From the sequence record MW248466.1: DNA of 64,000 nucleotides, one strand, 5' to 3'. Of this stretch, positions 51,486 through 63,099 are shown piece by piece (positions within the stretch are counted from its first letter, which is position 1; every line of letters begins with the position of its first letter). The notes beneath the pieces were generated by a model. The model was not told the origin of the DNA and did not search any database. It was given only the letters and a program-made list of their open reading frames with translations. A program made the translations under genes and the position numbers.

Positions 51486-51785
51486 ATGAATACAATCAAA
51501 ATAATGGATACAGAAATTCTACAGGAAGCTGTAGAAGGAAAAGAGAATAACGGTGGAGGTTACGAACATACTCGTACCGTTTTCGAATTCCAAGGAAAAC
51601 AAGGAGTTTTCGAAGACACTTCTTGTGGTGATTTCGGTAGCAGATTCTTCATGGAATGGGATGGAAAAATGACTATGTGGGGAAGTATGTTTGATAGTGA
51701 AGTCGAATACAGTGAATTCGATGAACAAGAACAATCAGAACTTCTAAACCATTTTAGAGTTCCTGTTTTTGAAGAAACAATCTAG
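51486..51785 (+). CDS. acidic hypothetical protein (99 aa), monocistronic
   Basis: Own promoter motif, RBS AAGGA, and terminator TCTAGGACATT/AATGTCCTAGA at 51781-51802. Confidence 0.75.
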   Translation: MNTIKIMDTEILQEAVEGKENNGGGYEHTRTVFEFQGKQGVFEDTSCGDFGSRFFMEWDGKMTMWGSMFDSEVEYSEFDEQEQSELLNHFRVPVFEETI

Positions 51786-51847
51786 GACATTAATGTCCTA
51801 GATTTCTTTTTATTTTTTTTTTTCTAAAAATATTTGATTTTGTATGT

Positions 51848-51860
51848 AAATATATATTAT
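51848..51860 (+). promoter_or_regulatory. AAATATATATTAT motif (putative early promoter) heading the tag-family array
   Basis: Exact 13-mer. Confidence 0.6.
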
Positions 51861-51925
51861 AAAAATAGATGTAATTAAGAATTACTTAATTAAAGAAGAA
51901 TTTAAATAAGGAAGTGTAAAAGGAT

Positions 51926-52408
51926 ATGATATACTATAAAAATAAAATAAATAATGAAATATATGAAGTTAATAATATTCATAGAAAGGATGATGCTTTT
52001 TATTATGTGTTTGGTAATGAATTTAAAAAAGAAAGAATGGAATTATATGAATCAGTGGGTAAAAAAATTGATTTATTTGATAAAGATAAAGGACATAAAG
52101 AATTAAACTTCCAATTAAATTATGACTCATCTAGATTATTTTTAGTTACACATATGAAATATGATAATAATAATCCTTTTGCACCTAAAGTAGTAGATTT
52201 AAAGAATCAAAATCTTGTCTCATCTGATTCTTCAGAAGATCTTTACTATATATTATATAAAAGAATGTGTAATGCAATAGATATACCTTTATTAAATTAT
52301 AATATATTATTAAAAGAATTTAATTTTGATAATGAAGACATATTTAAAATAATACCAGAAGATTGTAAAGAAGTAAAAGATTTTAAAATTAGAAATCTTT
52401 TTAAATAA
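51926..52408 (+). CDS. tag-family protein (paralog of 53136)
   Basis: Starts MIYYKNKINNEIYEV; ends EDCKEVKDFKIRNLFK. Confidence 0.8.
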   Translation: MIYYKNKINNEIYEVNNIHRKDDAFYYVFGNEFKKERMELYESVGKKIDLFDKDKGHKELNFQLNYDSSRLFLVTHMKYDNNNPFAPKVVDLKNQNLVSSDSSEDLYYILYKRMCNAIDIPLLNYNILLKEFNFDNEDIFKIIPEDCKEVKDFKIRNLFK

Positions 52409-52423
52409 AAGGAGAAATTTTAA

Positions 52424-53125
52424 ATGGAAAATATTAAATTGTATAAAAATCTAGAAAATGGTAATAAATTTACTTTATCTAAAGATGAAATTAATAATGG
52501 TAGATTTCTTTATAAAGTCATGAAACAAATAAAAAGTAATTTTTACCCATTTTATAATTATGAAGACCATCCCATTACAATCAATGAAAACTCTTATTTA
52601 ATTAATGAACAAATGAATTTTCATTTTTATACACGTTCAGATATTATTATAAATTTTAAAAATTTAATTGGAGTAGACGAAGATATAATAATTAAAATTA
52701 ATGAAAATGAAGAAAGAAATAATTCAGCTTCAATTGTTTGTTTCTCTGATTCCAATACAGATAATGATGGAATTTATGAAAATATATTTCAAATTGTTTT
52801 AAATACAAAAAAGGCTAAGAAAATAAATCGTATGCTAAATAAATATGAAAGTGATAAATATAAAATATCTTCTCATACAATGGATAAAAATGAAGTAAAT
52901 TTTAAAGTCAAATTTAAACAAGATTATTTGTCTGATAAGAATAATGACTTTTATGATTCTCTAGATGAATTGATATATTATATATTAAAGGACCTTAGAA
53001 TTAAGATCGATAATTCGTATATGTATTTTATGGATTATCTAAGATGGAATTTGGAATTTATTGCTGAAGAAATTACTGATGAGGAAGAAATTAAAAAATA
53101 CTTAATTAAAGAAAAATTTAAATAA
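52424..53125 (+). CDS. tag-family protein
   Basis: Ends EEITDEEEIKKYLIKEKFK. Confidence 0.8.
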   Translation: MENIKLYKNLENGNKFTLSKDEINNGRFLYKVMKQIKSNFYPFYNYEDHPITINENSYLINEQMNFHFYTRSDIIINFKNLIGVDEDIIIKINENEERNNSASIVCFSDSNTDNDGIYENIFQIVLNTKKAKKINRMLNKYESDKYKISSHTMDKNEVNFKVKFKQDYLSDKNNDFYDSLDELIYYILKDLRIKIDNSYMYFMDYLRWNLEFIAEEITDEEEIKKYLIKEKFK

Positions 53126-53135
53126 GGAAGTGTAA

Positions 53136-53627
53136 ATGGATATGATATATTACAAAAATAAAGTAAATGATGAAATATATGAAGTTAATAATATTCATAG
53201 AAAAGATGATGCATTTTATTATGTATTCAATAATGAATTTAAAAAAGAGAATTCGTCTTTTTATAAATCTTATGGTAAAAAGATTGATTTATATGATGAA
53301 GATGTAGGAAGTATAAAATTGGAGTTTTTCTTAATTTATGATTCTATTAATCTTCATTTAACTACACACTTTTCTTGGGATTTTAATAATATTCCTTTTA
53401 TACCTAAAAATATAGAATTAACAAACCAAAATCTTGTCATATCAGACTCTTCAATTGATCTTTATTATTTATTCTATAAAGGAATATGTGATGTGATAGA
53501 TATAAATATGGCACATTATAATATTCCATTAGAAAAATTTAATTTTGATAATGGAGATATATTTGAAATAATTTCAGAAGATTGCAAAGAAGTAAAAGAT
53601 TTTAAAGTTAAAAATCATTTTAAATAA
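53136..53627 (+). CDS. tag-family protein (paralog of 51926)
   Basis: Ends EDCKEVKDFKVKNHFK. Confidence 0.8.
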   Translation: MDMIYYKNKVNDEIYEVNNIHRKDDAFYYVFNNEFKKENSSFYKSYGKKIDLYDEDVGSIKLEFFLIYDSINLHLTTHFSWDFNNIPFIPKNIELTNQNLVISDSSIDLYYLFYKGICDVIDINMAHYNIPLEKFNFDNGDIFEIISEDCKEVKDFKVKNHFK

Positions 53628-53641
53628 GGAGATAGATAAAT

Positions 53642-53818
53642 ATGAGAAAAGAAATTAGAAAAAATGAAAGTAAACAATTGACTTTACAAGAAAAATGGGA
53701 AATTGATGTAGAATTATACAGAGAGAAAAATAAAGACAAGAAAAAAATAAAAGGTCCAATTATAGGAAAGAAAGTTTCTAAAGAAGAAATGAAAAGAATC
53801 TTAAAAGGAGAAGAATAA
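53642..53818 (+). CDS. small basic hypothetical protein (58 aa, not in ORF track)
   Basis: RBS AAGGAG; MRKEIRKNESKQLTLQEKWE...KRILKGEE*; stop overlaps next ATG. Confidence 0.6.
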   Translation: MRKEIRKNESKQLTLQEKWEIDVELYREKNKDKKKIKGPIIGKKVSKEEMKRILKGEE

Positions 53819-54489
53819 TGAAAAATTATGATTTTGATTTATATATGATAAATAAAGATACAAAAGATAATTATTTTATGAAAATAAATAAAGATAAATA
53901 TAATAATGATAGAGAGTATATTGAAAAAGTAAATACTATTAATATGATAAAATTATTAACTGATAACGCTGATCCTGATTTTGAAAATATAACAGAATTT
54001 GAAGTTGATTGTAAACTTAAATTAAGAGATTATGATGATTATAAAGATATTAAGTTATCTTATTATCAAAATATGAATGAACTTACAAACAATTTTGCTG
54101 GAATAACATATGTATCAACTAAATTAAAATTTATAAGTAAAGAAAAAGATAATAGTTATCTAATAGATGAAATATTATATGAGTATAAAATGATGAATGG
54201 AAATGTAGATTTGAATAATAAACGTAATACAGTTAAAGTAAAAAGAAATGAAACTGTTACTTTGAAAGATGTTAGTGAAAGATGTCCTAAATTCTACTTA
54301 TCACTTGAGAAGTTTACAAAAGAATTCATGAAGATGATAACTGAATTAAATAAATATGAAGACATACAGTTTTTAATTGATGGAACATACTATAGTTTAA
54401 AAGATATCAATTTACACAATAAAGATTTATTTAGAACTGCTACTAATAAAGAATTTAAGAATTATTTAGTTAAAAAGGGATTTAGATAA
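53818..54489 (+). CDS. tag-family protein
   Basis: Ends TNKEFKNYLVKKGFR. Confidence 0.8.
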   Translation: MKNYDFDLYMINKDTKDNYFMKINKDKYNNDREYIEKVNTINMIKLLTDNADPDFENITEFEVDCKLKLRDYDDYKDIKLSYYQNMNELTNNFAGITYVSTKLKFISKEKDNSYLIDEILYEYKMMNGNVDLNNKRNTVKVKRNETVTLKDVSERCPKFYLSLEKFTKEFMKMITELNKYEDIQFLIDGTYYSLKDINLHNKDLFRTATNKEFKNYLVKKGFR

Positions 54490-54556
54490 AAATGAGATAA
54501 TGAATTAATATAATTCATTATCTATATATTAATTTAATTAGGAGAGTGGAAAAGGT

Positions 54557-55165
54557 ATGATTTTAAAAGAGAATGAATTCTATTATAATAAAGATATTAA
54601 TGAACTTTTTATAATTAGTAAAGATGAAAGTGATATTAACGATAAGATAAATAAATTCTATTATAAAAAATTAATAGAAAGAAATTTAGATTATCATGAT
54701 TTAAATGATACTTTTTACCATAATGGAAATGTAGTTTTTGATTTAATGGATAATGATAAAATATTCTTCAGTGACATATATGATGGAACTAGAAAATACA
54801 TTCCTGTAGGATACGTAGAATTTTTATATTCAGAAATTGAAAATGACGAATCAACATTACAATTAGATATTTTTATTAGCAAAGATAATGATGTACACTT
54901 TTTAGAAATTGATGATCATTCACAAGGTGTTTCTATAACAATGATGAAAGACTTTTGTGAAAAAGATCTTATAAATTATAATAAATATGAAAATGATTTA
55001 AATGCATTACCTAATTTATTTGACATAATGCTTAAAGAAAATAATAATGGAAATATTAAAATCTTTATAAATGGTATTGATATATTTGAACCTCATGCAT
55101 ATTTTAGAAAATTAGAAGACGAAAAAGAAATTAAAAATACACTAGTCAATAAAAATTTTATATAA
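54557..55165 (+). CDS. tag-family protein
   Basis: Ends KLEDEKEIKNTLVNKNFI. Confidence 0.8.
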   Translation: MILKENEFYYNKDINELFIISKDESDINDKINKFYYKKLIERNLDYHDLNDTFYHNGNVVFDLMDNDKIFFSDIYDGTRKYIPVGYVEFLYSEIENDESTLQLDIFISKDNDVHFLEIDDHSQGVSITMMKDFCEKDLINYNKYENDLNALPNLFDIMLKENNNGNIKIFINGIDIFEPHAYFRKLEDEKEIKNTLVNKNFI

Positions 55166-55179
55166 AGGAGATAAATATA

Positions 55180-55800
55180 ATGAATGTAAATGAATATATA
55201 ACTAATCATGATTTTTATAGAGTTGGGAATGAAGGTCAAGTATTTGTATTTAATAAAGATATATCAAAGGATGAATTAAATTCTAAAATATTTACTAAAT
55301 TATTTGCATGCGAAAATATACACATATTATTGCCTGAATATGGATATTATGTAATAGAAGAAAAAAATGTATTCTTAAGAAATAATGATAAAATATTATT
55401 AGTCGAAAATATTACTATTGACATAAGTTTAATTAAGGACGATCTAATTGAATTAAATTTTATATTAAATATTGAATCTGATCTTTATTCAAAAATTGGC
55501 CCTTTTGAAAAAGATAATCATGATCCTTTTTATTATTATAATACTATTATTCAAATAGAAAATAAAGATAACTTTCAACATGAATTAATTTCTCATATAA
55601 CAAATCATTTTAATAAAATGAGTGATGTTGATTTAATGCTTTTAACTACTAAAAATGAAATTAAATTTAATAAAGATCATAGCGTTAATAAAAAATGTAT
55701 TGATTTTAAATGTAATTTTAATGAAATTTATAAAATACTTAATAAATTAGAAGATGAGAAAGAAATTAAAAAATATCTAACTAAAGAAAATTTTAAATAG
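55180..55800 (+). CDS. tag-family protein
   Basis: Ends KLEDEKEIKKYLTKENFK. Confidence 0.8.
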   Translation: MNVNEYITNHDFYRVGNEGQVFVFNKDISKDELNSKIFTKLFACENIHILLPEYGYYVIEEKNVFLRNNDKILLVENITIDISLIKDDLIELNFILNIESDLYSKIGPFEKDNHDPFYYYNTIIQIENKDNFQHELISHITNHFNKMSDVDLMLLTTKNEIKFNKDHSVNKKCIDFKCNFNEIYKILNKLEDEKEIKKYLTKENFK

Positions 55801-55813
55801 GAGAAGATCAATA

Positions 55814-56485
55814 ATGTATAATTTCGAACTATATAAAAATATCGATACAGGTATTTACACAGAAATGAAAGATATGGAAAATAAAAAATATATTAAAGGT
55901 TTTTCTCTTATAAATTGTTTAGATGATCGAGTATATATAGTATTAGAAGGTGAAGATGGAAAACCTACATTAAGACATCAAGGTATGACAAGAAATTTTA
56001 TTGCAATAAGACAAGGAGATATTATTTATAAAGTAAAGGAAATTGAATTTATTGTAAAATTTAAAAATGATAAAATGGAAGTTCATTCTAAATTAACGCC
56101 AAAAGCTTCAACTCTTAATAAATTAGAAAAAATAGGAAATTTTTATAAAATAAGAAATTTATTCTATTACAAAAAGACTTTTCATAAAGATAATGAAATA
56201 AATAACTCTTATAGACGAGATGATAAAAATCAGGTTATTATTAGCGAAGTATTTGAAAAATTATTAAATGAAATTAAAAATGACACTATTGATTTCTATT
56301 TAACTGATTACGATATGATAGAGGAATTAGAAAACAATAAAAATAAAATGAATATAAAAGATTTTTCTAAATATAAAGATGGTACATTGGAAGATTTTAA
56401 TATATTGAATATAGGAAAACAGTTAAAGATAGTTACAGATGAAAGAGAAATTAAGAAATATATAATAAGAGAAAATTTTAAATAA
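55814..56485 (+). CDS. tag-family protein
   Basis: Ends VTDEREIKKYIIRENFK. Confidence 0.8.
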   Translation: MYNFELYKNIDTGIYTEMKDMENKKYIKGFSLINCLDDRVYIVLEGEDGKPTLRHQGMTRNFIAIRQGDIIYKVKEIEFIVKFKNDKMEVHSKLTPKASTLNKLEKIGNFYKIRNLFYYKKTFHKDNEINNSYRRDDKNQVIISEVFEKLLNEIKNDTIDFYLTDYDMIEELENNKNKMNIKDFSKYKDGTLEDFNILNIGKQLKIVTDEREIKKYIIRENFK

Positions 56486-56498
56486 GGATAAGATAAAT

Positions 56499-57053
56499 AT
56501 GAATTTAGATAATATTGTAATATTAAAAAAGAAAAATGATGGTGAATTTAGCAATAATGGATTTGTAGAATTTAATCATAATAGTATTAATAATGATGAT
56601 ATATTGAGTCTTTCATTAATTACTTTATACACAAATTTGTATATAAAGAGTGACATGAAATATGATAATTTTGTTGATCATTTAAGTAATTTTTATTTAG
56701 AAATAGATGGACATTTAAAAGGACCATTAGTTATAACATACGATGAGAATAATCGTATACTTATATTTCATAACAGTAGATTGAACTCAGATATTTTTGA
56801 GCTTAGAGAATTTAATGTAAATACTAAATTATATTCATATTTAATTAAAGATATTGAATATGATGTAGTAGAAGAAGATTTAATAAAATCAGTAATTAAT
56901 GGATCAGAATATATAATAAATAGTGAAAGAATTAAACCAAAAATTATTATTGATGGATTATATAAGGATATTACAAATGTATTAAATTATTTTGAAAAAC
57001 TTACCGATGAAAGAGAAATTAAAAATTTCTTAGTTCAGAAAGGATTTAAATAA
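56499..57053 (+). CDS. tag-family protein
   Basis: Ends KLTDEREIKNFLVQKGFK. Confidence 0.8.
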   Translation: MNLDNIVILKKKNDGEFSNNGFVEFNHNSINNDDILSLSLITLYTNLYIKSDMKYDNFVDHLSNFYLEIDGHLKGPLVITYDENNRILIFHNSRLNSDIFELREFNVNTKLYSYLIKDIEYDVVEEDLIKSVINGSEYIINSERIKPKIIIDGLYKDITNVLNYFEKLTDEREIKNFLVQKGFK

Positions 57054-57072
57054 AATATAAGGAGGAATAAAT

Positions 57073-57696
57073 TTGGATAAGACATTATATGTATCAGATA
57101 TATTAGATGAAAAAATTATAGGAAGAAAGGATCTTAATAAAGATGAACTTTTTGATTTGTCATTTAATACAATTTTAAATAATTCTGATGACAATAGATT
57201 TAATAAAGAAGGATTTAGTTTAATGTTAACGTTTTCAAAAGGATTAATTTTAAAATTTGATTATACAGACAAATATTTTTATGTGAAAGATTTTATATTT
57301 TTAATAGAAAAAGTTGATGGCAACTATGAATTTAATTTTACATTAAGTATTCCAGAATTTACAGACAGTAAAATTGAAATTGGATTAGGAATTTTTGAAT
57401 CTGAAAAAGGTCATAGAGAATTTTATTTTAATGATTTTTCTTGTTATAAAGAAGGAAAAACTTTATTAGAAAGAGCTAAAGAATATTTAACGGATGATAT
57501 TTTTAATAATTATGGATTAAGTATCAATATTTTTACATTGAAAGATAAAAATAGAATTTTGTCAGATTATGATTTTGTCATAAATAATAATGATATAGAT
57601 GAGATTTACAGTTTAAAAAATATAGACAAATTATTTAAAGAAATAACAAATGAGAAAGAAATTAAGAAATATCTAACTAAAGAAAATTTTAAGTAG
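57073..57696 (+). CDS. tag-family protein
   Basis: Ends EITNEKEIKKYLTKENFK. Confidence 0.8.
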   Translation: MDKTLYVSDILDEKIIGRKDLNKDELFDLSFNTILNNSDDNRFNKEGFSLMLTFSKGLILKFDYTDKYFYVKDFIFLIEKVDGNYEFNFTLSIPEFTDSKIEIGLGIFESEKGHREFYFNDFSCYKEGKTLLERAKEYLTDDIFNNYGLSINIFTLKDKNRILSDYDFVINNNDIDEIYSLKNIDKLFKEITNEKEIKKYLTKENFK

Positions 57697-57741
57697 AGTG
57701 GAGTAAAAATAATTATTTAATTCAGGAAGGGTTTAGGTAAT

Positions 57742-58344
57742 ATGGAAATGAATTTAGATTCTTATGAATATTATTATAATGATGATGAAAAAGTTTTAGC
57801 TAAAACACCAGTTGATATATCAAAAGAAACTACTAATAAAAAGATTTCAATTGAATACTATAAAAATATATTTAAAAAAGATTTTTATCTGTTTCGTAAA
57901 CAAATTATTGGAACTCATGTAATATTCGACAGTGATTCTTTGCATAAAATAATTAATAAGAGTGATGGAACATCTGTACCAGGATTTAATTTATTATTAG
58001 ATTTTGAAGTTCTTAGTGTTTCAAGAGAAATTATCTTGAAACTAAGTTTTTCAATTAATGATTCTAAATTCTTTAAAACATTTGATAAAAGTAAAGATAT
58101 TTTAGAATTTTCAAAAATGAGTTCTATATATTACGATCATGTAGAGGATAACCTTGAAGATAAAATGGCATATTTATTAGCTAAACTATTCTTTGATATG
58201 CATGTGAATGAGAATGAAGATATCGAAATTTATTTAGAGGATAAATTTAATGAAATGTTAGATATATCTAAACCGTATAAATACTTTAGATTGTTAAATG
58301 AAAAAGAAGTTAAAAAACACTTAACAAGAGAAGGATTTAAATAA
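57742..58344 (+). CDS. tag-family protein
   Basis: Ends LLNEKEVKKHLTREGFK. Confidence 0.8.
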   Translation: MEMNLDSYEYYYNDDEKVLAKTPVDISKETTNKKISIEYYKNIFKKDFYLFRKQIIGTHVIFDSDSLHKIINKSDGTSVPGFNLLLDFEVLSVSREIILKLSFSINDSKFFKTFDKSKDILEFSKMSSIYYDHVEDNLEDKMAYLLAKLFFDMHVNENEDIEIYLEDKFNEMLDISKPYKYFRLLNEKEVKKHLTREGFK

Positions 58345-58415
58345 ACATTTTTAATGAATTTAATTAACTTTCTTTTATATTAATAAATATAATGAAAGAG
58401 AGTTGAATAAGATAA

Positions 58416-59195
58416 ATGTCTGAAACTAATGAAATTGATTTAATATCACAAATCAATGATATGATGGATGAGTATAAAATGTTAGTTAAATTTAAAGATA
58501 AAATGGAAAATAAAGAAATTCAATTAGAAAATCGTATACAGGATTTAACTAAGAATCTGAAATATCCTAAACATACATTCGTATCTAATATGGAAGCTAA
58601 TATTATCAGTGTAGAAAAAGAAATTAAAGATACTATTATGCAAATGAAAAATGTTAAAAAAGATATTATTGACTTAACTATGAAAGCTCAGAAAATGGCT
58701 GAAGATGATGAATCTGAAGATAATTACAAAACTCTTGCTAAAAATGTACTTAATGAGCTTAATAATATGTCTAATAAAGATATTCTAAACAGTATGATGG
58801 AACCTGAAGAAGTAAATGATGAAGATACTGATTTTAGTGAAGAATTGGATGCGAAATTATCACAATTAGATGAAGAAGAGAAATCTATTAATAAAGAAGT
58901 AGATCAAAAAGAAGAATTAAGCGAAGAAATTAATGAACTAGACCAACAAGATTTATCTTCTATATTAAAAGTCTATAAAGGCACATTACAATTCTTTGTT
59001 ATAGGAGATTCTCCTGAAGAATATGAATTAGTAGTTGCTGATATGGATATGAATATTATTGAAGAAGATGAAATGAAAGATGAATACCCAGAGTTATTTA
59101 CTATGACTAGAGATCTATTATTTGAAGATGTTGAAGGTAATGATGAAATAGTTACAGATGATTTTGGAAATATTTATCAAAAAGCAGAATTTTAA
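58416..59195 (+). CDS. acidic coiled-coil hypothetical protein
   Basis: N-terminal heptads, very D/E-rich C-half; lacks the tag. Confidence 0.7.
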   Translation: MSETNEIDLISQINDMMDEYKMLVKFKDKMENKEIQLENRIQDLTKNLKYPKHTFVSNMEANIISVEKEIKDTIMQMKNVKKDIIDLTMKAQKMAEDDESEDNYKTLAKNVLNELNNMSNKDILNSMMEPEEVNDEDTDFSEELDAKLSQLDEEEKSINKEVDQKEELSEEINELDQQDLSSILKVYKGTLQFFVIGDSPEEYELVVADMDMNIIEEDEMKDEYPELFTMTRDLLFEDVEGNDEIVTDDFGNIYQKAEF

Positions 59196-59265
59196 ATTAT
59201 TTTACCCCATAATATATTAATACAATATATTATGGGTATTTATTATATAGGAGAGTGAAATAGAT

Positions 59266-59391
59266 ATGTTAAAAAGATTATACAATTTATTAACTAAGAA
59301 AAAATTTGAAAAGAGATTATACGACTTTAGATTTAATTATCAAGATCATGAACATCTAAATCAAGTTCATAGAGATTCAAATAATATATAA
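59266..59391 (+). CDS. possible small protein (41 aa, not in ORF track)
   Basis: RBS AGGAG upstream; MLKRLYNLLTKKKFEKRLY... Confidence 0.4.
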   Translation: MLKRLYNLLTKKKFEKRLYDFRFNYQDHEHLNQVHRDSNNI

Positions 59392-59410
59392 TATGAAAGG
59401 ATGATTATTA

Positions 59411-59812
59411 ATGTTATCAGAATATAGATTAAATTCAAGTAAAGAAAATATTAAACAGCTATTAAGAGATTATGGTTTTAAAAAGGACTCTTATACTAAA
59501 GCTTTATTATATAGAAAACGTGTAACTGATCCAAATGATATTTTATTCATAGTAGCTGAAGTAGTTATTGAAACTAATTCAGATCTAGTTAAATTAAATT
59601 ACTATGATAGTAAACATAATAGATTTAATCCTTCTAATGAATCACCAGAAGTTCAAAAGGGATTAAGTATATTAGAAGATATGAAAGAAAAAGAATTATT
59701 AATTGAACCAGAATTAACTCGAAATGAAGAAGAAAAAGAAGTTCTTGATAAACTTAAAAAACAACGTGAAGAAATGGAAAATGGTCAAGTATCACCCAAT
59801 TCTGAAAATTAG
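59411..59812 (+). CDS. hypothetical protein (133 aa)
   Basis: ORF with RBS AAAGGA. Confidence 0.7.
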   Translation: MLSEYRLNSSKENIKQLLRDYGFKKDSYTKALLYRKRVTDPNDILFIVAEVVIETNSDLVKLNYYDSKHNRFNPSNESPEVQKGLSILEDMKEKELLIEPELTRNEEEKEVLDKLKKQREEMENGQVSPNSEN

Positions 59813-59815
59813 AAT

Positions 59816-59828
59816 AAATATATATTAT
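59816..59828 (+). promoter_or_regulatory. AAATATATATTAT motif (putative early promoter)
   Basis: Exact 13-mer upstream of second block of tag genes; followed by hairpin 59838-59867. Confidence 0.6.
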
Positions 59829-59880
59829 AAAAATGTTATCCCAATACTATTAAATTAGTATTGGGATTATTATACTAAAA

Positions 59881-60699
59881 TTGGAGATGAAATGGATAAT
59901 GACAAAATATTTTATAGATAAAGAGAAAGATGAATTAATTGAAATTGATAGGAATTATCTTAACCGATATGAATATATTGCATATGTATTAACTACTATG
60001 GATATTAATAATCTTTTAAGTAGTAAAGGATATGCTAAATCTTTCATAGATAATATTTCTAAAGAAGAAGATTATATGAATTTTCATTATAAAGAAATTG
60101 ATAATGATATTTATTTTATAGACAAACATAATAAAAATGATGCTTTTAAAAGATTTAATACTAATTTTCATATTAATTTTAATACTAGTAGAATGGATAA
60201 AATTGAAAGTGGAGAATTTAAATTAGATTTTTATTTTGAAAATTCATTATATAAAAAATATTTCAATGTAATTACTAATGGTTTAGTAAATAAAAATAAT
60301 TTAGTTAATGAAGGAATAAATGAAAAAACGAGAGCTTTTATACATGTTAAATCATTTGAAAAAGGTTTATATGATATCAAATATAGTGATGAATTATTTA
60401 CGGACGTAAATTTTCCAATACCTGCATTTGAGAAAAATCCTATTATTAAATTTATAGAAGATTTTAAGGATTTATTCTTTATCATATTATATCAGAATAA
60501 TCTTAGTGTATTAATGTCTCTTTATGAGATTAAATATATGTATAAAGATGATATAGAATTTTATATTAGTTTCTCCAGTAAGGGTGGCGGTTTAATTAAT
60601 TTATTAGATCTAATAGAAAGTGATGAAAATGATTTATTTAAAGAAATTAAAACCGAAAAAGAAATGAAAGCTTTTAAAGTTAGAAAAGGATTCAAATAA
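59881..60699 (+). CDS. tag-family protein
   Basis: Ends EIKTEKEMKAFKVRKGFK. Confidence 0.8.
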   Translation: MEMKWIMTKYFIDKEKDELIEIDRNYLNRYEYIAYVLTTMDINNLLSSKGYAKSFIDNISKEEDYMNFHYKEIDNDIYFIDKHNKNDAFKRFNTNFHINFNTSRMDKIESGEFKLDFYFENSLYKKYFNVITNGLVNKNNLVNEGINEKTRAFIHVKSFEKGLYDIKYSDELFTDVNFPIPAFEKNPIIKFIEDFKDLFFIILYQNNLSVLMSLYEIKYMYKDDIEFYISFSSKGGGLINLLDLIESDENDLFKEIKTEKEMKAFKVRKGFK

Positions 60700-60720
60700 T
60701 ATAAAGAAAGGATTTTCATA

Positions 60721-61461
60721 ATGGAATACAATAATTATTATAGATATAAATTAGATGGAAAAATACTTCACTTTGATATGGATAGAACTGATTTACGTAG
60801 AGATAAATTGGCTGAAATATTTACTAAAGTTAAGATGGAATATATTTATAAAGATGAAAAAATGATTAAAGAACCAAGAAACTTTATTTACCGATCTAAT
60901 CTTTCTTTAGAGTATTCTCATTTTAAAGATAAGGTATGTGAAATCAGACAAATTTCTAAAATAATGGGTAAAAACTATTTAAAAGATTTATTAATTTACG
61001 ATACAGATATTAGTTTAAGTTTTAATTCTATTTTAGATGGAGCTATATTTAAAAAAGATTTTCCAGAAGGATCTTTTCATGACAAAATAGAAAGTAATAT
61101 GAATAGAAAATATTTAATTTTAAGTGATAATATAAGTCATACTAGTGAAAATTTTGTTGATTTAAATGATAAAGATTATATTTTAAATTTTGAAGAAGTA
61201 GAATTGCTGATCAAAGAATTTAATAGAACTCTTTTAAATTATCTTATGGATTTAATGAGCTATGGAGATTTAAAATTAAATGTTAGGAAATCAGATTTAG
61301 CATATTTTATGACAGGAATATATACAAAAATGGAAGAACACGAAGATAAATTATTCCCTATATTTGATTATAAATTTTTACTTAATGAATCTGGATTATT
61401 TGAAGAGATTACAGATGAGAAAGTTATTAAAGAATATTTAGTGAAAAATAATTTTAAATAA
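60721..61461 (+). CDS. tag-family protein
   Basis: Ends FEEITDEKVIKEYLVKNNFK. Confidence 0.8.
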   Translation: MEYNNYYRYKLDGKILHFDMDRTDLRRDKLAEIFTKVKMEYIYKDEKMIKEPRNFIYRSNLSLEYSHFKDKVCEIRQISKIMGKNYLKDLLIYDTDISLSFNSILDGAIFKKDFPEGSFHDKIESNMNRKYLILSDNISHTSENFVDLNDKDYILNFEEVELLIKEFNRTLLNYLMDLMSYGDLKLNVRKSDLAYFMTGIYTKMEEHEDKLFPIFDYKFLLNESGLFEEITDEKVIKEYLVKNNFK

Positions 61462-61477
61462 AAGGAGAAATAATATA

Positions 61478-62257
61478 ATGAGTATAAATAAAAGTTATAC
61501 AAAATATTTTTTAAGCAAAATGACAGACGAATTATTTTCAGTCACTAATTTATCCAGATATGGTATAAATGAAGATCATTTATATCTACCTTATTTACTT
61601 CCTAACTTACAAATAAAAAGTGAAGAAATAACTATATCGTCTGAAGAGATTGTTGATAAAGGTGGCAATGGAAAGAATTTATATTCAGGAACTATATCAA
61701 TTGGATATATTTTCCCAATTATCAAATATAGTGTTAATAATAAAAATTCAATGAATATGCTTATTATTGATTTTGATATTATTTTCAACGAAGAAATAGA
61801 AAATGAAAACTATTTAAAAGTTAAAATTGAAAGCCCATATGATTCAGATATAAATTCAATATTTTTTAATAACGTTATTGGTAATATATTAGACGAATCC
61901 AATTCTTTAAAAATACCTTTTAGATTGCATATAAATAGTATGGAAGACTTAATATCAGATTTTAATAATAGTAAAGAAAATAATTTTAAAAATAATAAAG
62001 ATTTATATCAAATATTAGTTAAAGTGAATAGTTCTATATTGGAAATTTTATCACAAATTAGAGATCATTTTAATATAGAATTCTTTGTTTCAGATTCCTG
62101 TTTCTCACATATACCAATAATTGATAAGAGAAATAATAAGGATATGGATGATAAATATTATAATTTATTTGATGAGTATAGAATATCTGGTGTATTTGAA
62201 GAAATTACGGATGAAAGAGTCATTAAAAAATACTTAGTGAAAAATAATTTTAAATAA
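61478..62257 (+). CDS. tag-family protein (paralog of 62272)
   Basis: Ends FEEITDERVIKKYLVKNNFK. Confidence 0.8.
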   Translation: MSINKSYTKYFLSKMTDELFSVTNLSRYGINEDHLYLPYLLPNLQIKSEEITISSEEIVDKGGNGKNLYSGTISIGYIFPIIKYSVNNKNSMNMLIIDFDIIFNEEIENENYLKVKIESPYDSDINSIFFNNVIGNILDESNSLKIPFRLHINSMEDLISDFNNSKENNFKNNKDLYQILVKVNSSILEILSQIRDHFNIEFFVSDSCFSHIPIIDKRNNKDMDDKYYNLFDEYRISGVFEEITDERVIKKYLVKNNFK

Positions 62258-62271
62258 AGGAGATCAATATA

Positions 62272-63099
62272 ATGAGTGCAATTAAAAGTGATAAAAAGTA
62301 TTTCTTATGTAAAATAAATGATGAATTATTTGAAGTTGATAATAAAAATAATAGAGGGTCATTAGTTGATAATAAAAATAATAGATGGCCATTTTTATAT
62401 GATTATTTACCTTTAATAATAGCTGAAAAAATAATTAATTCAGATGAAAAAGACTCATATGAAACTAGTGCATTAGATGTGCATTATAAAAAAGAAGATA
62501 ATGTGATTACAGGAAATTTAAGATTTTTATCAAGATGTTTACCTCCTGTCCTTTACAATGTTAATGATAAAAATTCATTTGAAACAATTATAACTCTTGC
62601 AGATTTTAAGTTTAAAAGAGATATCACTAAATCTCCATTTAGCATAGATAAGAATAGTGCTATTGACAAAATACTATTTACAATGGAACCTATACAAAAT
62701 GAAATTGATGCAGCTTTATTTAATAGTATTATAAAAGATATTTTAAACGAAGAAGATGAAATAGAATTAGAAAGATTTATATTAGTTGATAATATTGAAA
62801 AATTATTAAATGAAATTCAAGAACAGAATATAAAACATCATGATGAATTTAGAGGTTTAATTTCAGATATATTCAATAATTATCTTAATATATTAAAATC
62901 ATTAAGACATCATTTTAATATTGAATTTTTCTTTGCTAAAACTTCTTTTTTAGATATGCTAAATATCTATGATTATGATGCCATTATTAATGATAGCTAT
63001 AAAATAAATATTTTTGAAGGCGATTTAGATGTTATATTTGAAGAGATTACGGATGAGAAAGTTATTAAAAAATACTTAGTGAAAAATAATTTTAAATAA
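62272..63099 (+). CDS. tag-family protein
   Basis: Ends FEEITDEKVIKKYLVKNNFK. Confidence 0.8.
   Translation: MSAIKSDKKYFLCKINDELFEVDNKNNRGSLVDNKNNRWPFLYDYLPLIIAEKIINSDEKDSYETSALDVHYKKEDNVITGNLRFLSRCLPPVLYNVNDKNSFETIITLADFKFKRDITKSPFSIDKNSAIDKILFTMEPIQNEIDAALFNSIIKDILNEEDEIELERFILVDNIEKLLNEIQEQNIKHHDEFRGLISDIFNNYLNILKSLRHHFNIEFFFAKTSFLDMLNIYDYDAIINDSYKINIFEGDLDVIFEEITDEKVIKKYLVKNNFK

Follow-up and report, generated by a model that had tools for sequence, protein, structure and literature searches.

Large phages carry lineage-specific early 'ORFan' multigene families, for example behind virion RNA polymerase promoters in AR9/PBS1-like and phiKZ-like phages. Such arrays consist of tandem and dispersed paralogues whose function is unknown and which lie behind early-promoter motifs; their products are small soluble proteins that evolve fast and are frequently lost between relatives. 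In each of these respects they resemble a family that we describe here from MarsHill, an AR9/PBS1-like jumbo phage of Staphylococcus. We analyzed a 64,000-nucleotide window of its genome (positions 62001-126000 of sequence record MW248466.1; G+C content ~20% in this region) and, within it, an array at window positions 51926-63099 that spans gp117-gp134. Both the RNA polymerase proteins and the array proteins encoded in the window have 100% matches in MarsHill. Every open reading frame (ORF) of gp117-gp134 is annotated as hypothetical. Fourteen of these ORFs encode tandem paralogues of 160-275 aa that share a tail of ~16 aa at the extreme end of the protein, with a consensus near TDEKEIKKYLVKxNFK; the remainder comprises two genes that lack the tail (58416-59195 and 59411-59812) and a pair of small annotated ORFs. 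We consider it probable that these 14 genes, together with about 20 dispersed MarsHill genes that carry the tail, make up one lineage-specific, fast-diverging, early family with a single fold.

Association of an N-terminal hairpin motif with the C-terminal tail

A tail matrix was built from the 14 array tails and applied to the end of every ORF in MarsHill and four relatives (PALS_2, SA1, Machias and LY01), and these same five phages were used for a census of N-termini. On this matrix the 14 array ORFs all reach 33-45 bits, whereas the genome median is -33. In MarsHill, 37-39 ORFs have tail-like ends, every one of them on the + strand, in clusters at 18-24 kb, 90-108 kb, 114-125 kb and 253-264 kb. 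A 148-aa MarsHill ORF that lies beyond the window (record positions 262241-262687) opens with MNYYKLTDEGIAEIF and closes with a degenerate tail (..TEKEFNYRKF); it probably belongs to the family and escaped the tail matrix.

A sequence-only reading of this DNA had proposed that the tailed proteins also share an N-terminal motif, for which it quoted eight strings. All eight are found, within the first 22 residues of their respective ORFs, which start at 51926, 54557, 59881, 61478, 62272, 55814, 52424 and 57742. Across the five phages, 64/143 tailed proteins vs 115/1025 untailed ones carry an adjacent aromatic pair within their first 15 aa, and the pattern [KRNT]Y[FY] occurs in the same interval of 44/143 tailed vs 15/1025 untailed proteins (31% vs 1.5%). 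At other positions of the tailed proteins both patterns are present at 2-5%, which is the background frequency. For the MarsHill tailed proteins encoded outside the array, the N-terminal pattern is present in 5/23, as compared with 3/199 untailed proteins (p=3.5e-4). The N-terminal feature is real and non-random.

Since both patterns were devised after inspection of the data, pattern-independent tests were added. When residues 2-28 were compared by Smith-Waterman alignment, tailed-tailed pairs gave a mean score of 20.1, with 5.9% of pairs at >=30, while the controls gave 17.5 for tailed-untailed pairs (1.9% at >=30), 17.9 for internal segments and 19.1 for shuffled N-termini (3.4%). This pattern-free effect is smaller than the one obtained with the regular expressions. 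Once the pairs of evident paralogues are set aside, gp119-gp134 and gp131-gp134 are the only ones to score above the family-wise shuffle null. A hidden Markov model (HMM) built from the eight quoted examples did not separate the tailed proteins encoded outside the array from untailed proteins (p=0.30), and because it failed to generalize we rejected a single strict N-terminal motif. In our reading, a strict sequence motif is found only in gp117, gp119, gp131, gp133 and gp134, with gp122 near to it, and elsewhere there is a degenerate hairpin pattern.

The aromatic pair is present in 9/14 array proteins and in 6/23 other MarsHill tailed proteins, and it is absent from starts of the gp125/126 type. 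It is commonest in tailed members of 100-170 aa, where it reaches 86%, and the N-terminal feature is absent from tailed proteins of <100 aa or >320 aa. The proposal of a shared N-terminal motif therefore stands in part: the quoted strings are present and the aromatic pair is enriched together with the tail, but the feature is neither universal nor one sequence motif. Across paralogues, similarity of the N-terminus is weakly correlated with that of the tail (Mantel r=0.16, p=0.013). Taken by itself, the N-terminal motif is an ordinary result of family membership and points to no new mechanism.

Predicted architecture and the middle region

Two members were modeled with AlphaFold2, using alignments of window proteins and protein-search matches that held 17 sequences for gp133 (61478..62257, 259 aa) and 13 for gp122 (54557..55165, 202 aa). 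The gp133 model has a predicted local distance difference test score (pLDDT) of 72.1 and a predicted template modeling score (pTM) of 0.76; the corresponding values for gp122 are 75.7 and 0.75. In both models the quoted motif is a beta-hairpin, with strands at residues 8-13 (TKYFLS) and 19-23 (LFSVT) in gp133 (61499-61546) and at residues 6-11 (NEFYYN) and 16-21 (ELFIIS) in gp122 (54572-54619). Both models also build the tail alike, from a short strand followed by a T-D-E cap, an amphipathic helix at residues 246-257 (gp133) or 189-198 (gp122) and, last, an [NG]-F-K/I end; strand 240-243 and the tail helix of gp133 are encoded at 62189-62254, and the strand and tail helix of gp122 (residues 183-202) at 55103-55162. 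The pLDDT is highest over the N-terminal 40 residues and the last ~50 in each model. The order of elements is also common to the two models: hairpin, helix, beta-meander of 5-6 strands, long helix, 2-3 short strands and tail helix, to which gp133 adds a helix-strand-helix relative to gp122.

Two other descriptions of the tail were set aside. For a SAP/HeH helix-extended-helix, which the tail resembles, there is no Pfam SAP/HeH match at E<=1, and the protein ends right after the first helix. As for a membrane-targeting amphipathic helix, the hydrophobic residues lack one clean face on our own reading of their spacing, and in the models this helix lies packed against the domain.

The 150-230 aa between the two ends had been described as hypervariable. 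This holds between paralogues, for which BLASTP alignment is mostly confined to the last 20-60 residues and hhalign with trimmed orthologue profiles reaches a probability of >=90 in 2/325 pairs, one being gp133-gp134 and the other a pair from elsewhere in the genome. Between orthologues the description fails, because those of each paralogue are collinear and full-length at 36-96% identity. Given this collinearity, 'hypervariable' describes old divergence between paralogues and not ongoing diversification inside one gene, the form that variation takes in a diversity-generating (DGR-type) region with its template repeat and nearby reverse transcriptase.

We compared both models with 48,161 representatives from the PDB using VIA-align and found that 21 of their top 50 analogues are in common. 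These are weak analogues that include ornithine-cyclodeaminase N-domains, actin-capping proteins, type III secretion chaperones and DR_1245, and all of the common ones align on the middle (residues 31-201 of gp133 and 25-175 of gp122). In Foldseek searches of BFVD, the top 11-13 matches of each model fit Staphylococcus jumbo-phage paralogues in length and identity. The gp122 model matches the entry taken as the PALS_2 gp123 orthologue with a template modeling score (TM) of 0.62, the entry taken as gp127 with a TM of 0.52, entries taken as the gp133/134 group with a TM of 0.42-0.49 and a probability of 1.0, and the entry taken as a 152-aa member from outside the array with a TMt of 0.46. Overall, cross-subfamily retrieval by both models has a probability of 1.0 and a TM of 0.42-0.62. 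Additionally, gp131, gp132, gp133 and gp134 align with one another over their full length, and these four and their orthologues share invariant residues in the hairpin (Y10 and K14), the middle helix (F130 and N131), the long helix (L191) and the tail (F240 and E246).

The same element order, the common PDB analogues and the mutual retrieval in BFVD suggest that the middles have diverged and were not swapped, so the middle looks like one diverged fold with no swapped-in domains. Support for one fold covers gp122, gp123, gp127 and gp131-134. The sequence-only reading had proposed a swapped middle carried on a modular display scaffold, and that proposal fares poorly: two subfamilies without similarity in their middles give the same element order, have 21 of 50 analogues in common and match each other in BFVD. 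As far as it can be tested with the gp122 and gp133 models, the middles appear to share one fold, an outcome that the sequence-only reading itself had counted against its proposal.

In the single-fold family that we favor, the members would be soluble, mostly acidic proteins of ~150-280 aa that are transcribed early. They would have a common alpha/beta architecture composed of an N-terminal hairpin, a helix, a 5-6-stranded antiparallel meander, a long helix, 2-3 short strands and a final amphipathic helix. The N-terminal motif would correspond to the hairpin, with the aromatic pair in strand 1, a turn rich in D, N, G or K, and a hydrophobic-x-hydrophobic pattern in strand 2. What had been called a tag would comprise the final strand, a T/S-D-E cap with the final helix that follows it, and an [NG]-F-[KRI] terminus. 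The two ends would be framework elements kept by descent, while the beta-meander and its flanks would have diverged beyond sequence recognition. The hairpin may pack against the C-terminal strands and helix, and the family may act early on host or defence targets through the variable surface of the sheet. A bolder version, in which hairpin and C-terminal strands and helix form a clasp that holds a diversifying meander, so that ~35 early 'binders' of one new fold would each have a different host or defence target, seems to us doubtful. A role as uracil-DNA glycosylase inhibitor was considered and rejected, in that published screens found no such inhibitor in MarsHill (PMC10303552) and nothing ties the array to one.

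Conservation agrees with this picture in some comparisons. Within the gp122 orthologues, mean pairwise identity reaches 0.88 in the hairpin, 0.87 in b9-b10 and 0.79 in the tail vs 0.58 in the meander; within gp131-134 it is 0.51 in the hairpin, 0.52 in strand b9 and 0.67 in the tail vs 0.33 in the meander. Together with the weak correlation between N-terminus and tail, these values would be compatible with contact between the two ends, but they do not decide the matter. Across all orthologue groups the tail is again above the middle (0.75 vs 0.63, p=7e-6). Constancy of the ends, as the sequence-only reading had it, is supported in that the two ends are the best conserved parts in these sets and have the highest pLDDT, but not by the first 20 residues over all groups; the idea is compatible with the data and unproven.

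Several points weigh against a single fold with conserved ends. The first 20 residues just mentioned have an identity of 0.65 vs 0.63 for the middle (p=0.2). The two members that were modeled both have moderate confidence and shallow alignments (13-17 sequences). BFVD accessions were assigned to paralogues from length and identity alone, and many of the cross-paralogue matches have a TM <0.5 with root-mean-square deviations of 7-13 Å. With TM values this low and two models, one fold is not established for gp117/119, gp118, gp121 and gp124. The hhalign comparison shows no middle homology in 323/325 pairs, with a power that is low because the orthologue profiles are shallow. The tail also ends helical proteins of 75-93 aa and long proteins of 395-689 aa that have no hairpin, indicating that the tail does not need the hairpin and that some of its carriers may not be homologous. 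Finally, we infer early expression of the array from a promoter motif, and the function of the family entirely. A search for RNA sequencing runs returned none.

Other explanations for the conserved ends

The conserved ends, or the tail alone, could be a docking or sorting signal recognized by a single shared partner, for instance a hub for virion packaging, injection or chaperone activity; binding to it would explain why the ends were retained on proteins that otherwise evolve freely. Both the presence of the tail on the hairpin-less proteins, which probably have different architectures, and its conservation above the rest of the protein within orthologues are in keeping with this explanation. 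We nevertheless regard it as unlikely. The tail is modeled as an integral strand and capped helix with the highest pLDDT and not as a free peptide, and the partner is a candidate only. A published virion proteome of phage DC4, which is shallow, lists 15 proteins (PMC10638138); none of these was matched to the array, and the gp133 orthologue UFVDC4_00040 is not among them.

It is distinctly unlikely, in our estimation, that the hairpin and tail form a constant clasp module into which unrelated middles have been swapped, as a modular display scaffold. The termini are the best conserved and most confidently modeled parts, the middles have no profile-profile similarity, and the PDB analogues cover the middle only, leaving hairpin and tail outside. 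The N-termini of gp119 and gp134 are very alike (score 53), and their middles measure ~110 and ~210 aa. These observations would all suit a swap, but distant subfamilies share the element order and the PDB analogues and retrieve one another from BFVD at the TM values given above, and the synonymous sites of the tail are without sign of recombination or gene conversion.

Base composition offers a third explanation, in which the N-terminal likeness is a by-product of 20% G+C or of A/T-rich codons after the start. The score of the shuffled tailed N-termini, 19.1 against the 20.1 observed, indicates that much of the raw similarity is indeed compositional, and the failure of the eight-example HMM to generalize fits as well. 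However, untailed proteins of the same genomes are 20-fold rarer carriers of the feature, internal positions of the tailed proteins lack it, Y10 and K14 do not vary in any of four paralogue groups, and the motif maps to a confident hairpin in two models. Composition is largely refuted by the untailed and internal-position controls, and we judge it highly improbable.

The least probable explanation, to which we give only a slender chance, is that the conserved unit is DNA, running from the tail codons through the ribosome-binding site into the opening codons of the gene that follows, and is either kept alike by gene conversion or used as a recombination or translational-coupling cassette: array genes are packed 10-21 nt apart, so that these elements are contiguous, but identical tail residues use the same codon at a frequency of 0.75 vs 0.68 expected, which is little homogenization, and motif and tail also occur together in the dispersed genes at 18-24 kb and 253-264 kb. 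On the basis of this codon usage, gene conversion of the tail or junction was rejected, and the synonymous differences in tail codons point to selection at the protein level.

Array layout, distribution and comparison with known systems

All genes of the array lie on the + strand. The first is gp117 (51926..52408, 160 aa), with the hairpin motif IYYKNKINNEIYEV at residues 2-15 (51929-51970) and 67% identity with gp119 (53136..53627, 163 aa), which has IYYKNKVNDEIYEV at residues 4-17 and whose N-terminal score against gp134 is above the family-wise null. Between these two lies gp118 (52424..53125, 233 aa; KLYKNLENGNKF at residues 5-16), whose N-terminus is closest to that of gp124 (score 43). 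The start of gp121 (53818..54489, 223 aa) is degenerate and hairpin-like, DLYMINKDTKDNYFMKI at residues 7-23, with the hairpin proposed from the residue pattern alone. Downstream of gp122 are gp123 (55180..55800, 206 aa), with hairpin-like DFYRVGNEGQVFVF at residues 11-24, and gp124 (55814..56485, 223 aa), with ELYKNIDTGIY at residues 5-15. The aromatic pair is missing from gp125 (56499..57053, 184 aa), which has a possible hairpin IVILKK..GFVEF and whose C-terminal 36 aa match gp122 (E=6e-5). A weak hairpin-like TLYVSDILDEKIIG is present in gp126 (57073..57696, 207 aa), which shares 35% identity with gp123 in the C-terminal 120 aa, and YYYNDDEKVLA occupies residues 10-20 of gp127 (57742..58344, 200 aa). 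All of these proteins are tailed paralogues.

The array is then interrupted by a stretch (58416..59812) that holds the acidic 259-aa gp128 (58416-59195), the small gp129 and the 133-aa gp130 (59411-59812); gp128 and gp130 have no tail, no N-terminal motif and no family match. Beyond it lie gp131 (59881..60699, 272 aa as annotated; KYFIDKEKDELIEI at residues 9-22), gp132 (60721..61461, 246 aa; YYRYKLDGKILHF at residues 6-18), which aligns over its full length with gp131, gp133 and gp134, and, after gp133, gp134 (62272..63099, 275 aa; KYFLCKINDELFEV at residues 9-22). The annotated start of gp131 is a TTG (MEMKWIM start). A GGAG is found at 59883-59886, and an ATG at 59899 gives MTKYF, exactly at the hairpin; this ATG is probably the true start. 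The sequence MKWIM also begins MarsHill ORFs at record positions 227157 and 215077, which suggests over-extended start calls there as well. Compared with its Madawaska orthologue, MarsHill gp134 has a 10-residue insertion in which an NKNNR.. segment is repeated (window ~62338-62370), which has the appearance of a tandem duplication of 30 nt immediately following the hairpin.

An early-promoter-like 19-mer, AAATATATATTATAAAAAT, is found at 51848..51866 on the + strand, 60 nt upstream of gp117 and directly after a terminator hairpin (51779-51804). A second exact copy lies at 59816..59834 on the + strand, 47 nt upstream of gp131, and is followed by a hairpin at 59838-59867. With up to 2 mismatches, AAATATATATTATAAAAAT occurs at 28 sites genome-wide, of which 27 are intergenic and nearly all are 45-65 nt before a start codon. 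Its core, TATATTAT, is the published AR9/MarsHill early-promoter consensus (preprint 10.1101/2020.12.14.422802), and the 19-mer, by sequence, is an extended form of that core. Given that exact copies precede both halves of the array, the array probably comprises two early transcription units. Likewise, terminator-like hairpins at 59206-59236 and 59838-59867 bracket the interruption by gp128-gp130, which suggests that the array is split into two operons.

The array proteins are soluble and mostly acidic, and they are without membrane segments. None of them, nor any of ten tailed proteins encoded elsewhere in the genome, reaches the cut-off in Pfam-A, and searches of PHROGs with the same proteins gave nothing significant, the best E-values (0.001-0.005) being for short stretches of families of unknown function. 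The papers that we searched contain no description of the tailed family or its termini. A HMMER profile of the C-terminal 60 aa, run against 1.84 billion representatives, returned 13 matches, each of which is an array orthologue with the module at its very C-terminus. Used as queries in word-based searches, gp122, gp133 and gp134 each retrieved 8-11 proteins, which come from Staphylococcus jumbo phages and a small number of metagenome contigs; these searches cover proteins of 0.55-1.75x the query length, so that blanks are uninformative on fusions or fragments. IMG/VR contained no related locus. The family is confined to the Staphylococcus jumbo-phage clade and evolves fast: the median orthologue identity of tailed proteins vs the remaining proteome is 85% vs 96% in PALS_2, 44% vs 76% in Machias and 37% vs 83% in SA1, and tailed proteins are lost between relatives more often than the remaining proteome.

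The Madawaska orthologue of gp122 is 68% identical, and closer matches (87%) come from metagenome contigs; the MarsHill and Madawaska genomes have ~92% DNA identity (preprint 10.1101/2020.12.14.422802). This locus looks like a case of allele replacement. Across window positions 54557-58344, 5-25% of sampled words are found in metagenome contigs from food fermentation, clothing, indoor, soil and bird or chicken gut samples, indicating that relatives of this phage clade are environmentally widespread.

About 1/7 of MarsHill genes belong to this previously undescribed family, which is limited to Staphylococcus jumbo phages, and these are under consideration for therapy. If the conserved ends correspond to the opening hairpin and the closing strand and helix of one fold, ORFan annotation, the design of truncations and the search for common or paralogue-specific partners could be placed on a rational footing. 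Foldseek found no match in the PDB at E<=0.001, sequence-profile searches of the PDB gave nothing meaningful, and the ESM Atlas yielded no usable lead and no model of gp122 or gp133. The predicted fold has no convincing solved relative, and an experimental structure would for that reason be informative.

Among known structures, the middles of both models match type III secretion chaperone/YbjN-like and actin-capping-like sheets (1xkp_B, 3kxy_A, 1jyo_A, 4h5b_B, 4akr_D and 7a0h_B), with which they share a helix, an antiparallel beta-meander and a long helix across the sheet. The coat fold of Levivirus, an ssRNA phage, resembles the gp122 model in its N-terminal hairpin, antiparallel sheet and C-terminal helices; several Levivirus coat proteins rank just below the family's own BFVD matches for gp122 and also appear in VIA-align (6yfb, 6yfa and 6yfu). 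With respect to the early ORFan arrays of AR9/PBS1-like and phiKZ-like phages, the MarsHill family differs in that its paralogues keep an N-terminal hairpin and a strand-helix tail of 16-20 aa, whereas the remainder of each protein has moved beyond profile detection.

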